Part shown: positions 46,680-63,000 of the stretch, piece by piece | How the letters are laid out: the number at the start of each line of letters is the position of its first letter | Numbering within the stretch: position 1 is the first letter of the stretch | Source of the DNA: Anthoceros angustus | Taxonomy: Eukaryota > Plantae > Anthocerotophyta | DNA length: 64,000 nt | NCBI GenBank assembly: GCA_010909165.1 | Contig: MU008204.1 | Coordinates: 79,810 to 143,809, forward strand | Direction of reading: 5' to 3' | Notes under the pieces: generated by a model | What the model saw: only the letters and a program-made list of their open reading frames with translations | Databases searched by the model: none | Told to the model about the DNA's origin: nothing | Position numbers and translations under genes: made by a program

Positions 46680-47938
46680 GCATTTGTAACTGTAATGTAG
46701 TCATGATCATGCTGAGGGATTGTATCTATGGCACGGTCAGCATCACTATCCTGCATATCGATGTTGATATTATGTAGTATACATTAGCAGAATGCTAGTT
46801 TGCCAACTTCCTTTGGATCTGGTGAAATTAGACATTTGTTCAAGATACGCCATGTACCTTTTAGACGTCCAAATGCCCTTTCCATCACAATCTAGCTTTA
46901 GCTATGTTTGTAGTTGAAGGACTCCTTGAACATGCTCAAGTTTTTGCCAGGGAAGGGAACAATAAGCCAAGGTAGTAATGGGAAACCAACATCACCAATT
47001 ATGTACTCCTAGATTTTGTGAGGCCCCAAAAGCATATCAAATCCATGGAGTCGCTTCTTGTCTCCTTTTAGTCAGTATAGGCTGGAATTACTGAGAACTC
47101 TGGAATCGTTTACACTTCTTGGCCAGCCAGCATAGACATCAATAAAGGCATGCTCATGTCGACAGTACCTTGAAGAGTGATGCTATAATTCTTCATGTGG
47201 TCAAAGTAGGTTGTTGAGATCACACTTGGAGGCAATTCTAGCTCAATGTGGGTGACATCAATAGCTGCTTTGCAATTTGGTAATCCACTGTGATTCCGGA
47301 AACCCATCTCCACCTCACTTGCCTCGACTCCTGTTAGCCACTTCACATGGTGGGCTGCACGAGAGGTGAGTGATTGCACAAACTTCCACACCACCTTAGA
47401 CAATGTTGACTCAGCTACACCAAACAATTCAGCAACTACTCTAAGAGAATCTCCAGTCCCCATTCTAGTGAGAACCATAGCCACCTGTTTTGCAACATGC
47501 AACTTACGGTTTGGCAAGGTAATGAGACATGGAGGAGGACGTATGGTCGAGTAAGGAGCAACAACACTACAGATGTAATTAAATGTGGTTGGGGAGACTT
47601 TGATCATCTCTCTCCATCGGTCAGGATCTCCACTTGGAACAATTGTCATGAACTTTGCCCACCAATGAAGTGACTGTGGCTCGATGTAGTACATGCCTAC
47701 CCTTCTCTGAGGCTTCCAGTATAATCGAGCTGTTGTGCATACCACCAGCCACATTGTGGTGAGGGGTGTCCTCCACATCTACCATTCTCGTGGAGAAAGG
47801 AGAACACAAATCTGCACATTTCGCAGGCAATAAGCTCGCTTGTAGATGTAGCTGCGACGCCGTATGCTGTGCGCTTGGGATTGTGGCCACAACGGCCATC
47901 ATAGCTGCGAGAATAGGGTGCCCTTGACGATCAGCCAT
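46680..47938 (-). pseudogene. Harbinger DDE transposase (HARBI1/DDE_Tnp_4-like)
   Basis: AELFGVAESTLSKVV, LPNCKAAIDVTHI, GWPGSVNDSRV, IIGDVGFPLLPWLIVPF, MERAFGRLKGTWRIL; four in-frame stops plus frameshifts. Confidence 0.9.
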
Positions 47939-49013: not shown

Positions 49014-51753
49014 ATGGAAATGGAGTGTGCGAGTGACCTTATGGTCTTGGGTAACAAGGGACCACAGGATGGGAATGAGCTCAATGAGAGTTTGAGGCAA
49101 AAATTGGCCAACATTGACTGGGATGGCCCAGGATATAGGGATAGTATGACAATCTTTCTGCAAGTGTTGGCACCTGAGCCTGCCGAAGGGACAGCTGCTG
49201 AGTTTCCGGGACAAGCTGGCATTCCAATTCCGGGCTTCGGCTATGCAGTTTGTCAAGTGTGTCAAGAGCCAGAGAGTTTTGGGGAAACTTTGCTGTGCGA
49301 TGGTTGCAGAACCAGCTTCCACATCACATGCTTGAGGCTGCAAGCTGAATACGCTTGTAAGCTTGATGAATGGTTTTGCCAATCTTGCTCTGAAAGGGGG
49401 TTTAATGAGAGCTGGCCACTGGGAATGGTGGACTTGAATTTCATGCTAAGCAGGTCATCACTGGAGGGAGGAAGGAAGGGGTGTAAGGATGTCCAGCAGG
49501 GGGGTCCTTCAGAAACTGCTGATTTGAGTAATATCACAGTGGAAGAGGCAACCTTTAAATCAGGGGATGCAGGAGTTTTGCAAATAGAAGGAAGGGGACT
49601 TAATGGTGGAAGAGGCAGCCAGACTGATAACTCTAACAGCCCAAGGCAAGTACTCACCTGCATCATTTCGTGAGGAAGTTTGCATCTGAACACAGAAAAG
49701 CACAGTTTCTCAACTCCTTCTGTGTAGGTCATAGCGCAAGGCTGAGTTATGTCAACCGTCTAGTTCCAGGCATCACTCCGAACTGACATAGTCTTAGCTC
49801 TGCATATAAGCATATCAGTATCTTGAGTAATTTGGTTCCATGGATTAAGTAGATTTGGCATGTGACCCTGTTTCAAATGTGTCTAGGAAATGTGTCATAA
49901 GTTTGACTTTGACTTGCAGGCCCAGAGCTTCTTCACAGCTATCTTCTGATGGTTCAGATAACAACAGCTTAGCAAGTAGTCAGAACAAGAATGAAAGGAA
50001 AAGATCAAGACAAGAAACTGAGACTACCTCAAAATCAATTTCAGAACCGGACATTCCAGTTGTTCGTCGGGAAGTTGAACAAAATGGAACACATGTGGAC
50101 CAGAGTATTGACCAACCACAGGATGGGAGCCGCTTTTCCTGCTCACCTGAAAGATTATTGAAATGTGCAGATGAAGCCCTGGAGCAGCTGCGGATCTACA
50201 TAGCTTCAAGGAATGGGACTCTTGATAATGGTTGGACAGCTCATGTCAGGGAGAGAAGGAGAGAGGGCAGGGCTCCAACCACCCGGACACACTACTATTC
50301 ACCTGAGAAAAAACTTTTCTACTCACGCAAGCAGGTCGCACGACACTTGGGTCTTGTTGATAGTGAGGATGATGCTGGAAGTGCAAGTGTTTGTGAAGCT
50401 GAGACCCAGGTCATACAAACCAAGTGTGATGGCAGTGCACTTTCAAGTCATGCTGTTGAAAGGCTTGCAAACGCCGTAACTGGTTCAGATGACACAACAC
50501 CATGCTGCGAGAGTGCAGCTCCATTGGTGGTTGCAGTCTCGCAGCCACCAATGGCGAAGACACCATACGATGGTGGCAAGGCTGATGCTTCGCTGACCAA
50601 GTGTAGAAGGTCTAAGCCAGCAAGGGCTGTCAACACTGGTGTGCCATGGAATGCAACAGATGCCGCCGAGTTGGAGCAGCAAGAAAGATTTCGCAGGTTG
50701 GAGGTTGCAGCCGTTGAGCAATTGCGGAGGTATGTAGCTGATAGGAATGGAGCTCTCGAAGACGGGTGGGCAGCAGACGTCACAAAACGGAAGAAGGGCA
50801 AAGGGTCAACTGTGAGGACACACTATGTGTCACCAATGGGCAAAGTATTTAAATCACGGGTACAGGTTGTTGAGTATCTTGGTCTTCCAAAGAATGTTCC
50901 AAACAGCCAGGAAATTGTTGCTGTAGGCTTCCGGACTAGCACAACAGACATTGTGAAGCCAGCTGCAAATGTGGGTGAGGTGATTGTACAATCAGCAATG
51001 GTAGACGTGGAGCTACCTGTTCATGCTCCCAAGGTCCCTGACGAATCATCTAGAGTGTGGCGGCCAACCAAGTTGCTAGAGGCAGTGTCTGCAATGGATC
51101 CATCCCAACCTCGAGAAGCTGAATCTCTTCCTGGCCAAGTCCATATACCAATGATGGTTGAGCCACACGCTCAACCCATTCTTCCTTTCCAGACTCATGC
51201 CTCCAGAGGTTCCTCAGGGAAGGGGTACTTGCAACTACTCGAGCAGAACATTGTGGACATGAGAGACCGAAGTGGTAGGCCAGGAGGAGGATTGAATCAA
51301 GATGAGTGTGGACTAGTGACAAACACAGAATATGCGGTAGACGAAAGCAGATGTATGTTGTTAAGGACAGACACTGCACACAATTCTAGTGTGGTAGAGC
51401 CCTTCATGGAACGAGTTCGAGAGGAGCAGTGTAAGGGGATATCTGACGCAGACTGTCATGATTCTGCAGAAGGTGCACCCGCAGACGAAAGAGAAGAATC
51501 TCAATGTTCAAAGTGTCAGGAGGATGCGGGTGATACTTTGACAGAGGATGATCTACTGCGGAATATCAGGGAGTTTGTGGCAGAGCAAAACGTGTTGCTT
51601 GAGAAAGAGATAGACCTCCAGATGGAGAACACGTCGAACAGCTTTGCACCACGCAAAAGGGCAAGAGTCCGATTGTGTTTGGACATCGCAAGACAACTGG
51701 GTGCTTCTGGGTTGAAGAATCTGGATATTCAGAGTCCAGACACTGGAACATGA
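49014..51753 (+). CDS. PHD finger plus tandem MBD9-type methyl-CpG-binding domain protein (about 829 aa; exons 49014-49669 and 49920-51753)
   Basis: C4HC3 PHD CQVC...LLCDGCRTSFHITCL...WFCQSC; two repeats LEQLR.Y...RNG.L..GW...HY.SP..K.F.SR.QV...LGL; phase-2 GT-AG intron. The start codon is uncertain. Confidence 0.8.
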
Positions 51754-52386: not shown

Positions 52387-54290
52387 TCACCCCAGCAGGT
52401 GCAGAAGAGCCAGCGCTCCCGACGCAAGAAGCAGCGGCACCATGTCCCCAGCGTGCCGCGGCGGCCCTAGCGACAATCCGGCATCAGGCACGTTCATCTT
52501 GCAAGGCATGTTGAGCGCCTTGTCGAACAAGGGCGCAGAGAAGTCGACGATGTGCGGGTTGTCCTTCCTGATCAGGTTGGGATACACCCGGCACTTGACA
52601 GCCACAGCTGCGAGCTCCTCATCCTCGACTGGGAAGTAGCCGATCCCGCAAGGCCCGCACCCGACCGCCGGTTGGTCACACGGCAGCTGCAGCACAGAGT
52701 CGGCCTCAACAACAGCGGACTTGCTCAGATTGTTCTTGGTGTACACTTCCTTCTCATCAATCCCGCACGCTAGGGCCAGCGCCGGAACCTGCAGGGACTG
52801 CGTCACCAGGAAGGACGAGCCACAGATGGAGCAGGCAGAGGACGGGGCGGGGAGCTCGGCGCACGGTACAGATAGGTCCTGCCCTAACTGCAGCGCGGCC
52901 TCCGCCTGGACGGGCAGGATCCCGTTCGCGTACATCAGGAGCTCGGCGGGGACCTGGCACAGCTTCGCCATCGCATCAAGACTGGAGTCATTGATCCTCA
53001 CCTCGGGGCTGCAGGGACTGCATTTCGGCGAGAGCGAAGTACCGCAGGGAACGATGAGCGGGGGGGATTTCGGCGTCAGCGCGGAGCCCGCTCCGGGATT
53101 GGCCGCCTCCAGCCCCGGCGTCCTGCACTTGGCCGACACCGCTGCCAGGCTCTCGAACTCCTCCGGCGTGTACGAGGCCCCGCACAGCCCGCACTGCCTC
53201 GAGCTCTCCCCGAAGCAGGGCACGCTGATCAGCTGCCCCGGCTCGAGCTCGGACGATGCGTTGCTGAGCGCGGGGTTGGCAGCCAGCAGCCCTCGTCGCT
53301 CACCCTGCAGGTGAGCGCGGCTGTGTCGACAATGTCTCCTGCCTTGGCGCGGTAGAAGAGGCCGCAGTCGCCGCATCCCCGGGTGGATCTCGCCAGCTGC
53401 GGCTGCCCGCACGGGACGCTGATGTACTGCCCCGGGTAGAGCTCCGGAACTTCGGTGGCCGCGAAGACGAGGTCCTGGTTGGCCTCGTGCAGGGCCTGGG
53501 CGGGGAGGCGGCACTTGGCGGCTATGGCGTCGAAAGCGTCCCCTTCCTTGACGAAGTAGAAGGCCCCGCACGGTCCGCAGTCCGCCGGGTCTGTCCCCGT
53601 GCATGGCACGCTCACCGTCCGTCCCTCGGCCGCGTCCACTTCCGGGTTGGCTTGCTGCAGCAGGCCGAGGTCGACATTGCACGTCTTGGAAAGGGAAGAG
53701 AGCGTGTCGCCGACGCCGCCCGCGTACGATGCACCGCAGACGCCGCAGCTTGAGGTGTTGAGCGGGAGGGAAGGCGACCGATCTGACGGGGCCGGGGCCG
53801 GGGTCGGGCTCGGAGCTGGAGCTTGGTTTGGCGGTGGCGATGCCGCTGGCGGCGGAGGTGGAGGAGCCTGCGGCGGGGGTAACGTGGGAGGGTTTTGTGG
53901 AGGAGAATTCGGAGGCGCCGGTGGAGAACGAGCCGGAGTTGCTGGCTCCGGCGGAGAAGGAGTCGGAACAGTTGCCACCGGTGGAAACGGCGATGGTGAC
54001 TGGAGTCGCGTCTTCTTCCGCTGCTCCTTCCTCCTGTGCTTCTCCCTCTTCTCCTTGTTCCTCTTCTTGGTCCTGTTGAAGCTCGCGGAGTTTTCCTCGA
54101 AGCTGCTCCAAGTGCCTGGCCGCGCGGGAAAGAGGTTGCCGCGGGGCGAGCTTCGTATGGACCTGTGAGGAGGAGGACGATCCTGCTCTAACGCTCTACC
54201 GACACGGAGAGCATTGAAGCGACCGAGTCCCCTTGTGCAGAGGTATAGTGACCCGATCCACAGGAGAAGCACCAGATACGATCTGGCCAT
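52387..54290 (-). CDS. Secreted Pro-rich protein with seven LysM repeats and a putative GPI anchor (about 634 aa if one G is restored at ~53291)
   Basis: Hydrophobic N-terminus; Pro-rich linker; seven CxxC...GD-like...C...ANP-like...(V/L/M)PC repeats; short hydrophobic C-terminus; a single -1 frameshift in a G run joins the two ORFs. Confidence 0.85.
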
Positions 54291-56347: not shown

Positions 56348-59300
56348 TCAGCAATGCTTGACCTCGCCGACCAAAAAACTATGAACCAGTCCGTCCATGT
56401 CCGTCCACCAACTCTGACCTGGCTGTTTCCATGCCCTCAAGCTTTTTCTCATGGCCTGCATTTCTTGTTTTTGCTCCCACATCTGGACACCGGTGTATAT
56501 GTTCGACATCAACATGTATGCCGAGACATCTTTCCTGTCTAGCTTGACTGCTTCATCAAAAGCATAGCGTCCCACATTCACGTTGTTCCACTTCCGACAG
56601 GCACCCAATAGAGTGTGCCAAACTGCAGAGTTGGGGAGTACAGGCATTGTCCTTACTACGGATAGTGCCTCCTCCAGTTGCCCTGCGCGACCCAAGAGAT
56701 CCACCATGCATATATAGTGGTCTACTGTGGGAGTGACATTGTATTGCCGGCTCATAGCCTTGAAACACTCTTCCCCCTTGTTCACCAGACCCGTATGATT
56801 ACATACGCTTAGTAGACACAAGAACGTGATGCCGTCTGGATTGATACTATCCTCGCTCATTCTGAGAACCAAGTCAAAGACTTCTTCACTGTTACCTTGA
56901 CGGGTGTACCCTGCAATCAGTGCATTCCAGCTGGAAACATCTCGTTTGGGCAATGCCTCAAACACCTGCAATGCATCGGCCATGCTACCACACTTCCCAT
57001 ACATGTCGATCAAACTGCCTGCTACGAGGACATCAGCTTGGAGCCCTTGTTCGTTGATCTGTGCATGAAGCTGCTTACCAAGATGCAAAGCTGCAACACT
57101 TCCACATGCCTGAAGGAGGCACACAAATGTGACGGAGTTGGGTGCAACAAGGCCCTCTGATAGCATGTCCTTGTAAAGACAAAGTGAGTCCTGCCCCATC
57201 CCCTGCTGTGAATACCCTGCTATCATACCACTCCACGTTACCACATTTTTTTCACGAAGTCCATCAAATAAGACCCGTGCATCCTCGAGACTGCCACACT
57301 TTGCATACATGTTCACCAAACTACTGGCTACGAACACATCGGCCAGCAGCCCTTGTTTTCTAATATGTGCATGGAGCTGCTTCCCCGTCTCATAAGCCGG
57401 GGTACCCACACTTGCACATGCTTGCAGGAGGGAAACAAATATCATAGGATCAGGCGCAGCCATGCCTTCAGCTTGCATAGCACTGTAAAGCTCCAGGGCT
57501 TCTTGCCCCATGCCATGTTGGGAATATCCTGCTATCATAGCACTCCACGTCACCAAAGTTTTTTCACCAATGCTGTCAAACACGACCCGAGCATCCTCTA
57601 GGCTCCCACACTTTGCATACATGTTTACCAAGCTGTTGGCAACAAACACCTCAGCCTGAAGCTGCAGTTCTCTAATTTGTGCATGAAGCTGCTTTCCCAT
57701 CTTCAAAGCTGGGTTGCCCACACTTGCACATGCCTGCAGGAGGCAAACGAATGTCACAGAATTGGGTGCAGCTAAGTCTTCTTCTTGCATAACACTATAA
57801 AGCTCGAGGGCTTTCTTCCCCAGACCCTGCTTAGAATATCCGGCTATCATGACACTCCAGGTCACCACATCTTTCTGAGGAAGTGCCTTAAATACACAGT
57901 CAGCATCCTCAAGGCTCCCGCACTTGGCATACATGTCTACCAAACTGCTAGCTACAAACAAATCAGTTTGAAGCCCTTGTTCCCTGATTTGTTTATGAAG
58001 CAGCTTCCCTTGCTCCACAGCCGTATTGCCAACACTTGCACATGCCTGCAGGAGGGACACAAATGTCACAGAATCGGCTTGAACCATGCCTTCTTCTTGC
58101 ATTGCCGTGTAAAGACTAAGGGCTTCATGCCCAATACCCCGCTGGGAGTACCCTCCTATCATGGCATTCCATGTCACTACATTCTTTTGACCAAGTTTAG
58201 CAAAGACGTTCCGAGCATCCTCTATGCTCCCGCATTTTGCATACATGTTCACCAGGCTCCCACCTACAACTACATCAGCCTCAAGTCCTTCTTGTCTAAT
58301 CTGGGCATGAAGCTGCTTCCCACTCTCCAAAGCTGCAGAGCCCACACTTCCACATGCCTGCAGGAGGCACACAAATGTCACAGAATTGGCTGCTGCTGTA
58401 CCGTCTTCTAGCATAGCACTATAAAGATGAAGGGCTTTCTGACCCATGCCCTGCTGGGAATATCCTCCTATCATGGCATTCCACGTTACCACATCCTTTC
58501 GAAGAAGTCCGTCAAACACGCTCTGAGCGTCTTGTAAGCTGCCACACTTTGCATACATGTCCACCAAGCAACTACACACAAACAAATCAGGCTCAACGCC
58601 ACTAGCCATCACATCAGCATGCACCTGCTGCCCAGCTTTCAGGTCTGCTTCTCTCGCACATGCCTGAAGGGCTGCAACAAACACATGGCCATTAGGCTTC
58701 ACTCTTGACCTCCGCATCCCATGATACAGCTCTATAGCCTTCCTGTCCTGTTCGTGCTTAAAATGAGCAGAGATTATGGCACACCACGTGAAGACATCTG
58801 GGTTGGCAACCATAGAGAACACATCCATGGCTTCTTGCAACCTGGCATGAGAAGCATACATTCTCAGGATGTGGTTGCACAGGAACGTATCCGAATCATA
58901 CCCCGTCCTAACAGTGAGAGCATGAATATAGCGACCCAGAGCCAGATCCTTCTTGGCCACACATTCCTTTAAGACCGTATACAAAAGAGATGCGGAGATA
59001 TGACACTCTGTGTGCACCAGAACTCCCATAGCCTCAACAGCCTCAGCGAGCTGCCCCTGCTCACATAGCTTGTGGACCGTTTCCACACTTACCCCCCTTT
59101 CGTATCCTGCAGGCTTTTGAGTGTCAAGAGCATCCGGCACGGTCCAGTTGGATATGGGGGCCTGATGACCCATCTCCACATCCAGAGCAACCAGCTGCTC
59201 ATCCCGCCAAACTGGCCTGAAGGAGTTGCTCAGTCCGACGCCCTCCTGGCACTCCCCATGCTGCAGGTCAGACGAACAAGAACCGCTGGAAGACATGCGT

Positions 59301-59509
59301 CCAGCCAGATATCTCCTAGGACGGGGTAGCTCTCTTGAAAAACTGCTGAACCTCGCGGCTTCACTGTTTGCCGACGGTTGGCTCCTTGATTTCAGCTGAA
59401 CGAGAGCTCTTCCTGGCATGTCGGATAACCCAGCACTTTGTTGTGTCCAGAAATACTGGATCCCCATCGACCATCTGTCGGTCTCGATTGCCACGCTCCA
59501 GACAGCCAT
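56348..59509 (-). CDS. PLS-class PPR protein, about 7 P-L-S triplets plus E domains, ending in a WW-type box without the catalytic DYW core
   Basis: Repeats VVTWNAMIGGYSQQG / NSVTFVCLLQAC / SLVNMYAKCGS; C-terminus WKQPGQSWWTDMDGLVHSFLVGEVKHC*; start codon uncertain. Confidence 0.9.
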   Translation of the reverse strand: MAVWSVAIETDRWSMGIQYFWTQQSAGLSDMPGRALVQLKSRSQPSANSEAARFSSFSRELPRPRRYLAGRMSSSGSCSSDLQHGECQEGVGLSNSFRPVWRDEQLVALDVEMGHQAPISNWTVPDALDTQKPAGYERGVSVETVHKLCEQGQLAEAVEAMGVLVHTECHISASLLYTVLKECVAKKDLALGRYIHALTVRTGYDSDTFLCNHILRMYASHARLQEAMDVFSMVANPDVFTWCAIISAHFKHEQDRKAIELYHGMRRSRVKPNGHVFVAALQACAREADLKAGQQVHADVMASGVEPDLFVCSCLVDMYAKCGSLQDAQSVFDGLLRKDVVTWNAMIGGYSQQGMGQKALHLYSAMLEDGTAAANSVTFVCLLQACGSVGSAALESGKQLHAQIRQEGLEADVVVGGSLVNMYAKCGSIEDARNVFAKLGQKNVVTWNAMIGGYSQRGIGHEALSLYTAMQEEGMVQADSVTFVSLLQACASVGNTAVEQGKLLHKQIREQGLQTDLFVASSLVDMYAKCGSLEDADCVFKALPQKDVVTWSVMIAGYSKQGLGKKALELYSVMQEEDLAAPNSVTFVCLLQACASVGNPALKMGKQLHAQIRELQLQAEVFVANSLVNMYAKCGSLEDARVVFDSIGEKTLVTWSAMIAGYSQHGMGQEALELYSAMQAEGMAAPDPMIFVSLLQACASVGTPAYETGKQLHAHIRKQGLLADVFVASSLVNMYAKCGSLEDARVLFDGLREKNVVTWSGMIAGYSQQGMGQDSLCLYKDMLSEGLVAPNSVTFVCLLQACGSVAALHLGKQLHAQINEQGLQADVLVAGSLIDMYGKCGSMADALQVFEALPKRDVSSWNALIAGYTRQGNSEEVFDLVLRMSEDSINPDGITFLCLLSVCNHTGLVNKGEECFKAMSRQYNVTPTVDHYICMVDLLGRAGQLEEALSVVRTMPVLPNSAVWHTLLGACRKWNNVNVGRYAFDEAVKLDRKDVSAYMLMSNIYTGVQMWEQKQEMQAMRKSLRAWKQPGQSWWTDMDGLVHSFLVGEVKHC

Positions 59510-59784
59510 GGCTTGCAGGAGCACGCTGTGAGCCTATGTATGCAAGAAGCACCAATTTCCTTCTGGAATGCGCCCCGCACACGAGCTTGGACCAGAGGAG
59601 GACCCAGCAACGAGCAAGACAGGCTGGGAAGCTGAAACTTGATACTCCGTGAGCATGCCTACTTTCCTCCATTCCTAGCTGAGAATCAGAAGTGCGGGCT
59701 ATGGAGTCATTCGGTGTCTGAGCCTTTCGAGTCCAATAACTCTGTTCCTAGGGACATCGTACCCGGGAGCATCTGATGGCACCC

Positions 59785-60023: not shown

Positions 60024-63000
60024 TCAGTGCCAGTCTCCGCATGAACAGAACCCATTAACAAAGTGGTGAACACGGTGGGCATCTCTAACGATTATCTCTC
60101 GATTTTCAATCCTGGACATGGCCTTGGTGCCGCTGTGGCAATCATTGCACATTCGGAGATTTTTTGTCACTAGCAAAGTTGCACCATCTGGAGTGTTCAG
60201 CAGACCATATGCTAGAGCCAGTTTCTCAGCGTGTCCGCACAGCTCATCTTCTTTCTGTTTCTCAACAGCTGGATTCGGTGCCACCGCGATTTGGGGAAGA
60301 CTGCCTCGCTGTTCCTCCAAACGGAGGTTTACACTTGTAAGCTTGGAGGCAACGTCGTCTGCTTCTTCCCCTACCATGAAAGTATGGACCTTACCTTTCA
60401 CCTCGATCCAGGCTCTTGCAGGCAGCTTCTGGGCACCTGCAGACTTCCTCAATCTCTCTATCCTCTCAAAATCCCTCCACCTACCAGCAGTTGCATAAAT
60501 GTTCTCCAAGAGCACATATGCAGCTGAGTCTTGAGGTTCCAGTTTTGTAATTTGCTCAAAACATCGCCTTCCCCTCTCTATGTCACCATGGCTCCTGCAG
60601 GCATTCAGCAACGACTTCCATCCTACGACATCTGCTTCAGATTGCTGTGACAGGAGCATGTCTTCAGCCTCATCCAGATGGCCTGCTCGCCCAAGAAGAT
60701 CAACCATGCAGTTATAGTGGTGGGCTGAGGGCCGGATTCCATGCTTCTTCACCATGAGATTGAAATAGTGCTGACCCTCATGTACCAGCCCTGCATGACT
60801 GCATGCCACTAGAAGACAAATGAAGGAAGCCTGATCAGGCTCAACCCCCTGCTTCTGCATCTCCGTGAAGCACTGCAGGGCTGCTACACCATCACTGCAT
60901 TGGCCGTAGCCGTTCAGCAGAGCGGTCCATGTTACAACGTTTCTGGCAGGCAATCTGTCAAACACTCCGCGTGCATCCATCAAGCTGCCACATTTTGCAT
61001 ACATGTCCACCAGACTGTTGCCAACGGCAGTATCTGCTTCAAGTCCTCGTTCTTGGATTTGAACATGAAAGTGCTTGCCCTGGTGTAAAGCTCCCACAGA
61101 TGCACATGCGTTCAGGAGGCACACATATGTGACATGATCTGGAGCGGTTATGCCTTCTTGTTGCATTCTTGCGTAGAAATCAAGAGCTTCTTGACCCAGC
61201 CCACGCTGACAATATCCTGAAAGAATGGCGTTCCAAGTCACAACACTTCTCGTGGGTAAGCTGTCAAAAACTTTGACAGCCTCCTCCAGCATCCCACATT
61301 TTGTATAACCGGCAATCATGGCACTCCCAGACACAGCATCCTTCGTAGGCAGATTGTCAAACACTACACGAGCATCCTCCAGGCTGTCACATTTCACAAA
61401 CATGTCCACCAGATTCCTGCCAATCGCGACATCTTTGTCCAATCCCCTTTCCTGGATCTGGGCAAACAGCTGCTGCCCATGATGCAAGGCACCAGAGCTT
61501 GCACACGCTTTCAAAAGGGCTACAAACGTGTTCTGATTGACAGCAGTCGCACATTCCCATTGCATATTTGCATACAGATTAAGGGCTTCTCGACTAGACC
61601 CATGCTGAGCATATCCTGCAAGCATGGCATTCCATGTCACGGTATCTTTCTTGTGCAAATTGTCAAATACTACACGGGCATCCTCCATGCTTCCGCACTT
61701 TGAATACATGTCCACCAAACAGCTGCCAACCACTAAATCCCCTCCAAGTCCAGCTTCCTCAATATTGCGATGGAGTTGCTTTCCCTGATGTAACGCTTGG
61801 ATGCTGGCACAGGCCTTCAAGGTGGATATGAATGTTACACGATTTGCTGGAATTAACCCCTCATTTTGCATACTTGCATAAAGTGCAAGGGCCTCTCGAC
61901 CAGCTCCCTGGTGAGCATATCCAGTGAGCATAGCATTCCAAGAGACAACAGTCTTCCTTGACATCTTATCAAACACCCCACGAGCATCCTCTATGCTCCC
62001 ACACTTGGAATACATGTCAACCAGCGAGTTCCCAACAAATTCATCAGGCTCAACTTTGCTTCCCAACACATCAGCGTGAACCTCCTTTCCAGATACCAAA
62101 TCTGATGCACTGGCACATGCTTTCAAAACTGCAACAAAAATGTGGTTGTTCGGTTGCACCGTCGTTTGCCGCATCTGTCGGTAGAGCTCAAGAGCCTGCA
62201 TAGGCTGCCCATGTTCGGCATGTCCCAAGATAATGAAAAACCAAGAAAACGCGTTCGGTGCAGCTAGTGTTGTGAACACATGTGTTGCATCCTCCAACTG
62301 CCCATGAGAGGCATACATGCGGATGATGTGGCTGGCCAAGAACGTGTTCAACTCATGGCCACTTCTCTGAGCAATATCATGAACTCGCCTACCAAGCACC
62401 AAATCTTTTTTTTTAATGCACCCCTTGAGAAGACGGTAGAGAGGAGGCACCCCCACGGCCGATCCTTGACGGAGCAAGAGCTCCGAGGCTTCAACTGCCT
62501 CACCAAGGTGTCCATCATCACATAGTTTGCCTAAGGTGCGAGGGTTGAACCAGCTCTTACTCCTCGATACCCTGCAAAGTCGAAGACCCTGTCAAACCCA
62601 GCTCACAGGCAACACAAGAAGGCTACAATATCTCACAGTGACTGGCTGAATAGGTTCCCAACCTCTCAGAATCTCTACCAGCTCGACGCCTGAATTCAGG
62701 CTGGTAGGATGCCCTACAGGCATCAGCCGTTTCCACTGGCTGTAGCTTCCCCTGAATCCATGAGTCATGCGAATCAACCCACAACGCATCTTTTGATGTG
62801 CTGTGCACACAGTCCGGATAAGTTGGGCTCCTCTGCAATGCTACAAACGTCAATTTCTGAACAGTCTTCAAAGGCTGAAACAGGCTTCAGAACATGAAAA
62901 TAGCAGAGAGGGACCACCTTGTTCCACCCGCTGTCCCTCCAGTCAGAAGGATTAGCTACAAACGTTTCCCACAACTCCCTTGCTCTCGGCTCCACTGCAA

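Follow-up and report, generated by a model that had tools for sequence, protein, structure and literature searches.

We have found, on the minus strand of a 64,000-nucleotide stretch of the Anthoceros angustus genome (contig MU008204.1, positions 79,810 to 143,809; hereafter the window, in which positions are counted from its first letter), a single-exon gene whose product carries seven LysM repeats with four cysteines apiece. The gene is a member of an old, conserved, unnamed and uncharacterised LysM family of land plants, and is neither a one-off nor a foreign gene. Its product is probably a secreted protein with a glycosylphosphatidylinositol (GPI)-type anchor that binds N-acetylglucosamine (GlcNAc) glycans multivalently at the cell surface. 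The window copy is interrupted by one frame break.

Plant LysM receptors are central to immunity triggered by chitin and peptidoglycan and to symbiosis. A separate seven-LysM family with its own cysteine framework, conserved from liverworts to gymnosperms, could reveal the ways in which polymeric microbial glycans are dealt with in non-flowering plants, and would provide a new disulfide-stabilised LysM scaffold. Studies of angiosperm models would have passed it by, since flowering plants gave no full-length member. The family can be tested directly in Marchantia, which has an orthologue.

Seven LysM modules with a four-cysteine framework

The array consists of tandem repeats of about 50 residues that open with CGVC, CGPC, CGDC, CGLC, CSPC, CSIC and CGPC at residues 182, 238, 306, 367, 424, 487 and 545, respectively, and are joined by linkers of 6-11 residues. 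Each repeat holds exactly four cysteines in the spacing C-x2-C-x17/18-C-x25-33-C and ends in PC. Beyond the 28 cysteines of the array there is a single one, in the putative signal peptide. The four-cysteine pattern matched seven times in the array, compared with a maximum of one match (mean 0.01) in 5000 shuffles of the array. An earlier note on this DNA, made from the sequence alone, had listed these repeats with their opening motifs, mid-repeat cysteine and terminal PC, along with a signal-like N-terminus, a GPI-like tail and the lack of a kinase, and all of these features are present on the minus strand.

The same note took the repeats for LysMs, and LysM folds they are, as established by Pfam, profile-profile comparison, AlphaFold and Foldseek. 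The two pieces into which the frame break divides the gene were searched separately, and an X was placed at the break wherever a read-through was needed. Both pieces matched Pfam PF01476 (34.4 bits, E 2.1e-8 for the first; 21.5 bits, E 2.3e-4 for the second; curated cut-off 20.9), and so did 17 of 17 family sequences, with a best E of 5e-40. When the window repeats were scored singly, repeat 2 lay above the curated cut-off, repeat 1 fell just below it, and scores were weak for the latter half of repeat 3 and for repeat 7. The hidden Markov model (HMM) check that had been proposed thus succeeded for both pieces, while among single repeats only 1 and 2 were clearly recognised.

Profiles built from the family for each repeat position aligned over their full length in 21 of 21 pairs, with hhalign probabilities of 96-99.5% that are raised in part by the shared cysteines. 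AlphaFold folded the intact sister sequence P0001 (introduced below) into seven beta-alpha-alpha-beta units (predicted local distance difference test, pLDDT, 64.7). In the second piece of the window protein (pLDDT 65.4), repeats 5 and 6 were beta-alpha-alpha-beta; in repeats 4 and 7 both helices were modelled and the strands were shorter. Foldseek ranked only LysM proteins at the top, namely Ecp6 (1.5e-8) and then CEBiP, CERK1, LYK3, NFP and other LysM-kinase ectodomains, and a sequence-profile search of the PDB agreed, with Ecp6 at 8e-12. Superposition was poor beyond single modules (root-mean-square deviation about 16 A), and the three-LysM cloverleaf packing was not reproduced.

On the module, the C-x2-C pair lies ahead of strand 1, the third cysteine after helix 1 and the fourth directly after strand 2. 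The cysteines of each module would probably form disulfides that staple the individual LysMs. A pattern scan of the window protein found no CxC anywhere, and CxxC instead.

A conserved land-plant family

A word search returned one relative of the window protein, P0001, which is intact, 707 residues long, 43% identical and present in two Logan assemblies. With P0001 as query, SELMODRAFT_416289 of Selaginella and Gb_31558 of Ginkgo were added. When a profile made from the LysM array was then run through the full HMM search, 10,678 matches came back at E values up to 1e-3. Nine cluster representatives, some of them from Logan assemblies, formed a tier of colinear, single-stretch matches (E 1e-97 to 1e-211) made up of land plants only. 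Its named members are from Cryptomeria japonica, Diphasiastrum complanatum (two genes), Marchantia polymorpha (MPTK1_7g16540 / MARPO_0123s0036), Psilotum nudum and Selaginella. Colinear seven-LysM orthologues with the same cysteine quartets are found in Marchantia, Selaginella, Diphasiastrum, Psilotum, Ginkgo and Cryptomeria, in addition to P0001, and all are annotated as hypothetical. The earlier note had proposed a distinct class; the family is indeed separate and uncharacterised, but the window gene is no lone novelty, having colinear orthologues across land plants.

The next tier of the search consisted of bacterial multi-LysM proteins (Oscillospiraceae), whose scores are sums over many generic repeats. 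Among the best 150 of the 10,678 matches, the CxxCG framework was confined to the plant family and two short relatives, and none of the non-plant matches carried it. In the full search no angiosperm, moss or alga contributed a full-length member; members of only one to three repeats could fall below the best 150.

Membership of the window protein is supported by the alignment, the single-stretch matches, the repeat identity matrix and the family tree: it has the seven colinear C-x2-C..C..C LysMs and the repeat-specific signatures common to all lineages, which are CSPCSP in repeat 5, CSICGSS in repeat 6 and VGCGPCG in repeat 7. In the family tree it is sister to P0001 with a support of 100/100, and the deeper branches are not separated. 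A tree of the single repeats (52 columns, 29 rows) was mostly unsettled, and the identity matrix was used instead. Same-index repeats from different species share 37-43% identity, compared with 24-34% for repeats of different index, the latter being the range seen within one protein. Since same-index repeats are the more alike between species, the seven-fold array predates the split of these lineages. Models of plant-receptor LysMs (PF23577, PF23473 and PF23446) matched 12 of the 17 members.

Conservation across the family is limited to the LysM array and the tail, and hydrophobic C-termini are a constant of the homologues. The polybasic and Pro-rich extension at the N-terminus of the window protein is absent from the members of Ginkgo, Cryptomeria, Marchantia and Psilotum. 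Gymnosperm members (P0003 of Ginkgo, P0004/P0152 of Cryptomeria) have an eighth, N-terminal four-cysteine LysM, and a spacer of about 65 residues lies between it and the remaining seven. A short sister subfamily comprises P0034 of Psilotum (319 residues) and P0143 of Ginkgo (Gb_22877, 264 residues), with three to four CxxCG LysMs and a hydrophobic tail; P0143 also has an N-terminal EGF-like domain.

The Marchantia orthologue (L003:3001-5699, KZ772795.1) has three modelled exons, of which the first is a short 5' exon, the second a large exon holding the LysM array and the third a short 3' exon encoding the hydrophobic tail. An older Marchantia model, P0155 (728 residues), reads into an unrelated DUF659 segment. 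In the deposited SELMODRAFT_416289 model there is no signal peptide, and its C-terminal extension is doubtful.

Comparison with known LysM proteins

[quoted passage not shown] The window protein departs from the LysM-RLPs in both module number and bridging, and in this the contrast with the CEBiP-LYM type drawn in the earlier note was correct. Plant origin and the lack of a kinase are features that it has in common with CEBiP, LYM and LYP proteins, and its hydrophobic ends, judged by hydropathy and residue pattern, may add a signal peptide, extracellular LysMs and a GPI-type C-terminal signal to these; models for plant-receptor LysMs match the family, and CEBiP is among its best fold matches. 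LYM2-like proteins form the nearest large ESM-Atlas clusters (score 0.81), which we treat as a lead only. Unlike those proteins, the family has seven LysMs (eight in gymnosperms) rather than three, the window protein has four cysteines within each LysM and no CxC between LysMs, no full-length angiosperm member was found, and the LysM array lies in one exon.

SELMODRAFT_416289 of Selaginella moellendorffii is an orthologue with seven colinear repeats and the same cysteine quartets. Zhang et al. 2009 (PMC2728734) singled out the Selaginella protein as the sole plant exception with more than three LysMs; they counted four and defined no family. That count is explained by the different Pfam scores of the single repeats. 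A Marchantia LysM-receptor study leaves the family out, and our literature search of open-access papers and preprints found no paper on the Marchantia gene identifiers or on plant seven-LysM proteins.

Among fungal proteins, the effector Ecp6 (PDB 4b8v) is the best match by both sequence profile and Foldseek and likewise has tandem LysMs. Of the cysteines of the window repeat, only C1 and C4 align with cysteines of Ecp6, which lie immediately ahead of strand 1 and immediately behind strand 2. Ecp6 differs in being fungal, in having three LysMs, no anchor and no counterparts of C2 and C3, and in placing cysteines between LysMs and none inside them (PMC4392113). The window gene, in turn, is flanked by plant genes and belongs to a plant-only family, and its product has its cysteines inside each module and ends in a hydrophobic tail.

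Fungal-specific LysMs carry four cysteines at positions 5, 17, 42 and 52 of a 53-residue module, together with WNP (PMC4392113). Tal6 of Trichoderma is similar in general plan, with seven LysMs and four conserved cysteines per module of about 53 residues, thought to form two disulfides each (PMC4392113). Its cysteines follow the 5, 17, 42, 52 plus WNP arrangement, as opposed to positions 1, 4, 22/23 and the last residue in the window repeats, it has no anchor, and Tal6 queries retrieve fungal proteins only (PMC4392113). The published fungal four-cysteine pattern gave 0 matches in the window protein, so the window framework is a solution separate from the fungal type.

The single LysMs of plant and algal chitinases gave profile matches with E values of 2.7e-5 to 7e-4 (Volvox 5k2l, Pteris 4pxv, Equisetum 5bum). 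The Volvox module has a cysteine just before strand 1 and a VPC end, in the places of C2 and C4 of the window repeats, and through this placement a clasp that joins the N- and C-terminal ends of a LysM module has a precedent. Intradomain disulfides have been reported for a fern LysM (PMC4392113). These chitinases differ in having one or two LysMs on a catalytic domain and in lacking the CxxC, the mid-repeat cysteine and the anchor.

The frame break in the window gene

On the minus strand, translation of open reading frames (ORFs) gives 333 codons in frame A (54290-53292), ending ..TCRVSDE, and 300 codons in frame B (53289-52390), running from LLAANPAL.. to ..LLHLLG. The break between them, a GG dinucleotide flanked by GAG and CTG, is where the earlier note had placed it. 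Extended past the break, frame A has 20 more codons before a stop at 53231-53229. Where the window gene has two bases, a single residue stands in the intact homologue P0001, and in the other homologues likewise. The run of G at the break is three bases only.

In its ORF reading the window gene has no intron. A small intron at the break was considered, with a donor-like GTGAGC at 53303-53298; the nearest AG would give 12 nucleotides and the next one 40 nucleotides, and the latter would also delete the conserved LLAANP. An intron was rejected because neither length restores the frame and the homologues have exactly one residue there.

The break is either an assembly one base short or a very recent loss-of-function allele of the window copy. 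That the lesion must be very recent, if it is not an error, follows from its being the only one, from the 300 codons that stay open beyond it, from the retention of all 28 array cysteines and all near-invariant family columns, and from an identity to P0001 of 46% before the break and 46% after it. Neither the word search nor the full HMM search found a protein from the same species that could serve as an independent copy of this site.

The strongest competitor of a functional surface protein takes the break as real and the locus as a very young pseudogene or truncated allele, which would yield at most an anchorless secreted fragment of 353 residues, made up of the Pro-rich region, the first two LysMs and half of the third. 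We consider this a serious possibility, though not the favoured one. The sequence as given is out of frame, with the frame A stop following closely, and the run of G is short. The neighbouring long ORFs of 632, 817 and 1058 codons (about 7.5 kb) are unbroken, which indicates that the assembly is not riddled with insertions and deletions. The family, moreover, appears to have been lost repeatedly, as no full-length member was found in angiosperms or mosses. Set against this are the same signs of integrity on both sides of a solitary lesion that make it so recent. The break limits the value of the window locus itself.

A 574-codon ORF in frame B (52387-54111, minus strand) overlaps the true N-terminal coding frame. 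About 274 codons at its start are spurious, produced by GC- and Pro-rich sequence; real coding sequence is confined to the final 300.

Proposed function and alternative explanations

The gene is one for a plant surface protein, and not for an injected effector or toxin. In the reading that we prefer, the signal peptide would be cleaved and a GPI anchor attached, which would place the protein at the outer surface of the plasma membrane for multivalent binding of GlcNAc-containing glycans (chitin, peptidoglycan or oligomers of these). The LysMs would not be packed into a CxC-bridged three-LysM globule of the CEBiP/LYM/LYK type; each would owe its stability to its own cysteines, probably through disulfides. 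Without a signalling domain of its own, the protein could capture ligands as a partner of kinases or else act as a lectin that faces the wall. In the window copy and its closest relative, a polybasic and Pro-rich extension is present as well at the N-terminus.

Several observations weigh against this interpretation. The break may be real, given the unbroken long ORFs nearby and the short run of G, and the product would then end after 2.5 LysMs and have no anchor. Scored singly, repeats 4-6 had no Pfam match; their LysM nature is carried by the profile-profile comparison and the fold prediction, Pfam alone being insufficient. AlphaFold confidence is moderate (pLDDT about 65). The ligand-loop residues (the GDT-type motif) are degenerate in window repeats 4-6, and some of the seven modules may not bind sugar. 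Finally, the signal peptide and the GPI signal were judged from hydropathy and residue pattern.

Beyond the single gene, we put forward, as a tentative proposal that could well prove wrong, that the family is a fifth ancient land-plant clade of LysM surface proteins beside LYKa, LYKb, LYR and LYP. The clade would date back to the common ancestor of bryophytes and vascular plants, with losses in angiosperms and in mosses. Its members would be strings of seven LysMs, each stapled by disulfides, in a cysteine framework that is undescribed for LysMs of plants, fungi or bacteria. Long GlcNAc polymers would be read multivalently, as against the short oligomers sensed by three-LysM receptors.

An unlikely alternative to glycan sensing is that the protein is mainly a structural linker between wall and membrane, or a wall lectin, and not a sensor of microbes, its polybasic and hydroxyproline-rich-glycoprotein-like N-terminal part being held in the wall and the membrane side being formed by the LysM array and the anchor. 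The end distal to the anchor does carry the polybasic and Pro-rich regions, and a similar region is present in P0001 and in one Diphasiastrum paralogue. This extension is absent, however, from the Ginkgo, Cryptomeria, Marchantia and Psilotum members, conservation across the family is confined to array and tail, and GlcNAc polymers are not known from land-plant walls.

Much less probable still is a receptor dedicated to cyanobacterial or arbuscular-mycorrhizal symbiosis, a role of the kind that the earlier note had raised for cyanobacteria or fungi. Hornworts host Nostoc. Plant LysM receptors mediate symbiotic signalling (PMC6207691). A symbiosis-restricted role is disfavoured because orthologues are retained in Marchantia polymorpha, Ginkgo, Cryptomeria and Selaginella, of which the last three have no cyanobionts. 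Marchantia polymorpha forms neither a cyanobacterial nor an arbuscular-mycorrhizal symbiosis, and genes that serve only symbiosis are usually lost in non-host lineages.

Horizontal acquisition of an effector-like multi-LysM gene from a fungus or bacterium, which had been suggested from the lack of introns and to which the Ecp6 match and the bacterial second search tier might also point, can be dismissed almost entirely, because the family is monophyletic over liverwort, lycophytes, ferns and gymnosperms with position-specific conservation of its repeats, its framework is missing from the non-plant matches among the best 150 and the fungal pattern is missing from the window protein, plant-receptor models recognise most members, the Marchantia orthologue does have introns, and the flanks are ordinary plant genes (PPR and MBD).

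Protein architecture and coordinates

The features of the window gene are collected in Table 1. Hydropathy peaks occur at residues 2-20 and 617-634 only, which leaves no internal membrane span, and a signal peptide and GPI anchoring of the window protein may be inferred from these two ends. Neither the ORF nor the sequence downstream nor any homologue showed a kinase.

A segment of about 50 residues separates the N-terminus from the polybasic stretch, which itself lies between the signal peptide and the Pro-rich region; this polybasic stretch is matched in P0001 and not in the other orthologues, and might conceivably bind wall polyanions. A region similar to the Pro-rich part is present in P0001 and in Diphasiastrum P0006/P0153. 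The earlier note had called this part a Pro-rich stalk: the proline richness is real, but the region is N-terminal and thus distal to the presumed anchor, and not a membrane-proximal stalk.

Table 1. Features of the seven-LysM gene, in window coordinates
Feature	Position	Strand	Description and evidence
Whole single-exon gene	52387-54290	-	ATG at 54290, stop 52389-52387; two frames owing to one frame break
Signal-peptide-like N-terminus, residues 1-21	54228-54290	-	MARSYLVLLLWIGSLYLCTRG; hydropathy peak at residues 2-20 (heuristic)
Polybasic segment, residues 71-97	54000-54080	-	15 K/R of 27, by composition; matching K/R-rich segment in P0001
Pro-rich region, residues 96-181	53748-54005	-	44% Pro, 34% Ser/Thr/Ala, by composition; resembles hydroxyproline-rich glycoprotein; N-terminal to LysM array
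LysM repeat 1 (CGVC..VPC)	53601-53747	-	Pfam LysM 19.8 bits, LysM_RLK 21.2 bits
LysM repeat 2 (CGPC..VPC)	53409-53579	-	Pfam LysM 23.9 bits, E 4.2e-5
LysM repeat 3 (CGDC..VPC)	53215-53375	-	Interrupted by frame break; second half LysM 12.8 bits
Frame break within LysM repeat 3	53290-53291	-	Two bases, GG, in place of one codon, between GAG 53294-53292 and CTG 53289-53287
LysM repeat 4 (CGLC..VPC)	53044-53193	-	hhalign 99% to repeats 1-3 and 7
LysM repeat 5 (CSPC..VPC)	52861-53022	-	Most divergent repeat; hhalign 96-98%
LysM repeat 6 (CSIC..LPC)	52678-52833	-	hhalign, AlphaFold, repeat identity matrix
LysM repeat 7 (CGPC..MPC)	52501-52659	-	LysM_RLK 13.3 bits; hhalign, AlphaFold
C-terminal tail	52390-52500	-	Small residues (DAG, SLG), polar spacer, 18-residue hydrophobic end (52390-52443); GPI-signal-like; no cytosolic tail

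Genomic neighbourhood

The gene is flanked by plant nuclear genes, namely two PPR genes, one MBD gene and one transposase fragment, and Rfam gave no match in the window. There was no synteny with the locus of the sister P0001 (L001), where the neighbour is a WWE-RING-DTC gene. The MBD protein is encoded by a long ORF at 49855-51753 on the plus strand, with two MBD-like segments, RTHYYSPEKK.. and RTHYVSPMGK... A tandem pair of PLS-class PPR genes at 56348-59524 and 60024-62477, both on the minus strand, consists of long unbroken ORFs; an E motif closes one of them, and the other contains a DYW deaminase domain. A search with the PPR-DYW protein gave matches of 45-54% identity only, to Diphasiastrum and Logan proteins. 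An ORF at 47110-47778 on the minus strand matched HTH_Tnp_4, a helix-turn-helix of DDE transposases, and is probably a remnant of a Harbinger-type transposon.

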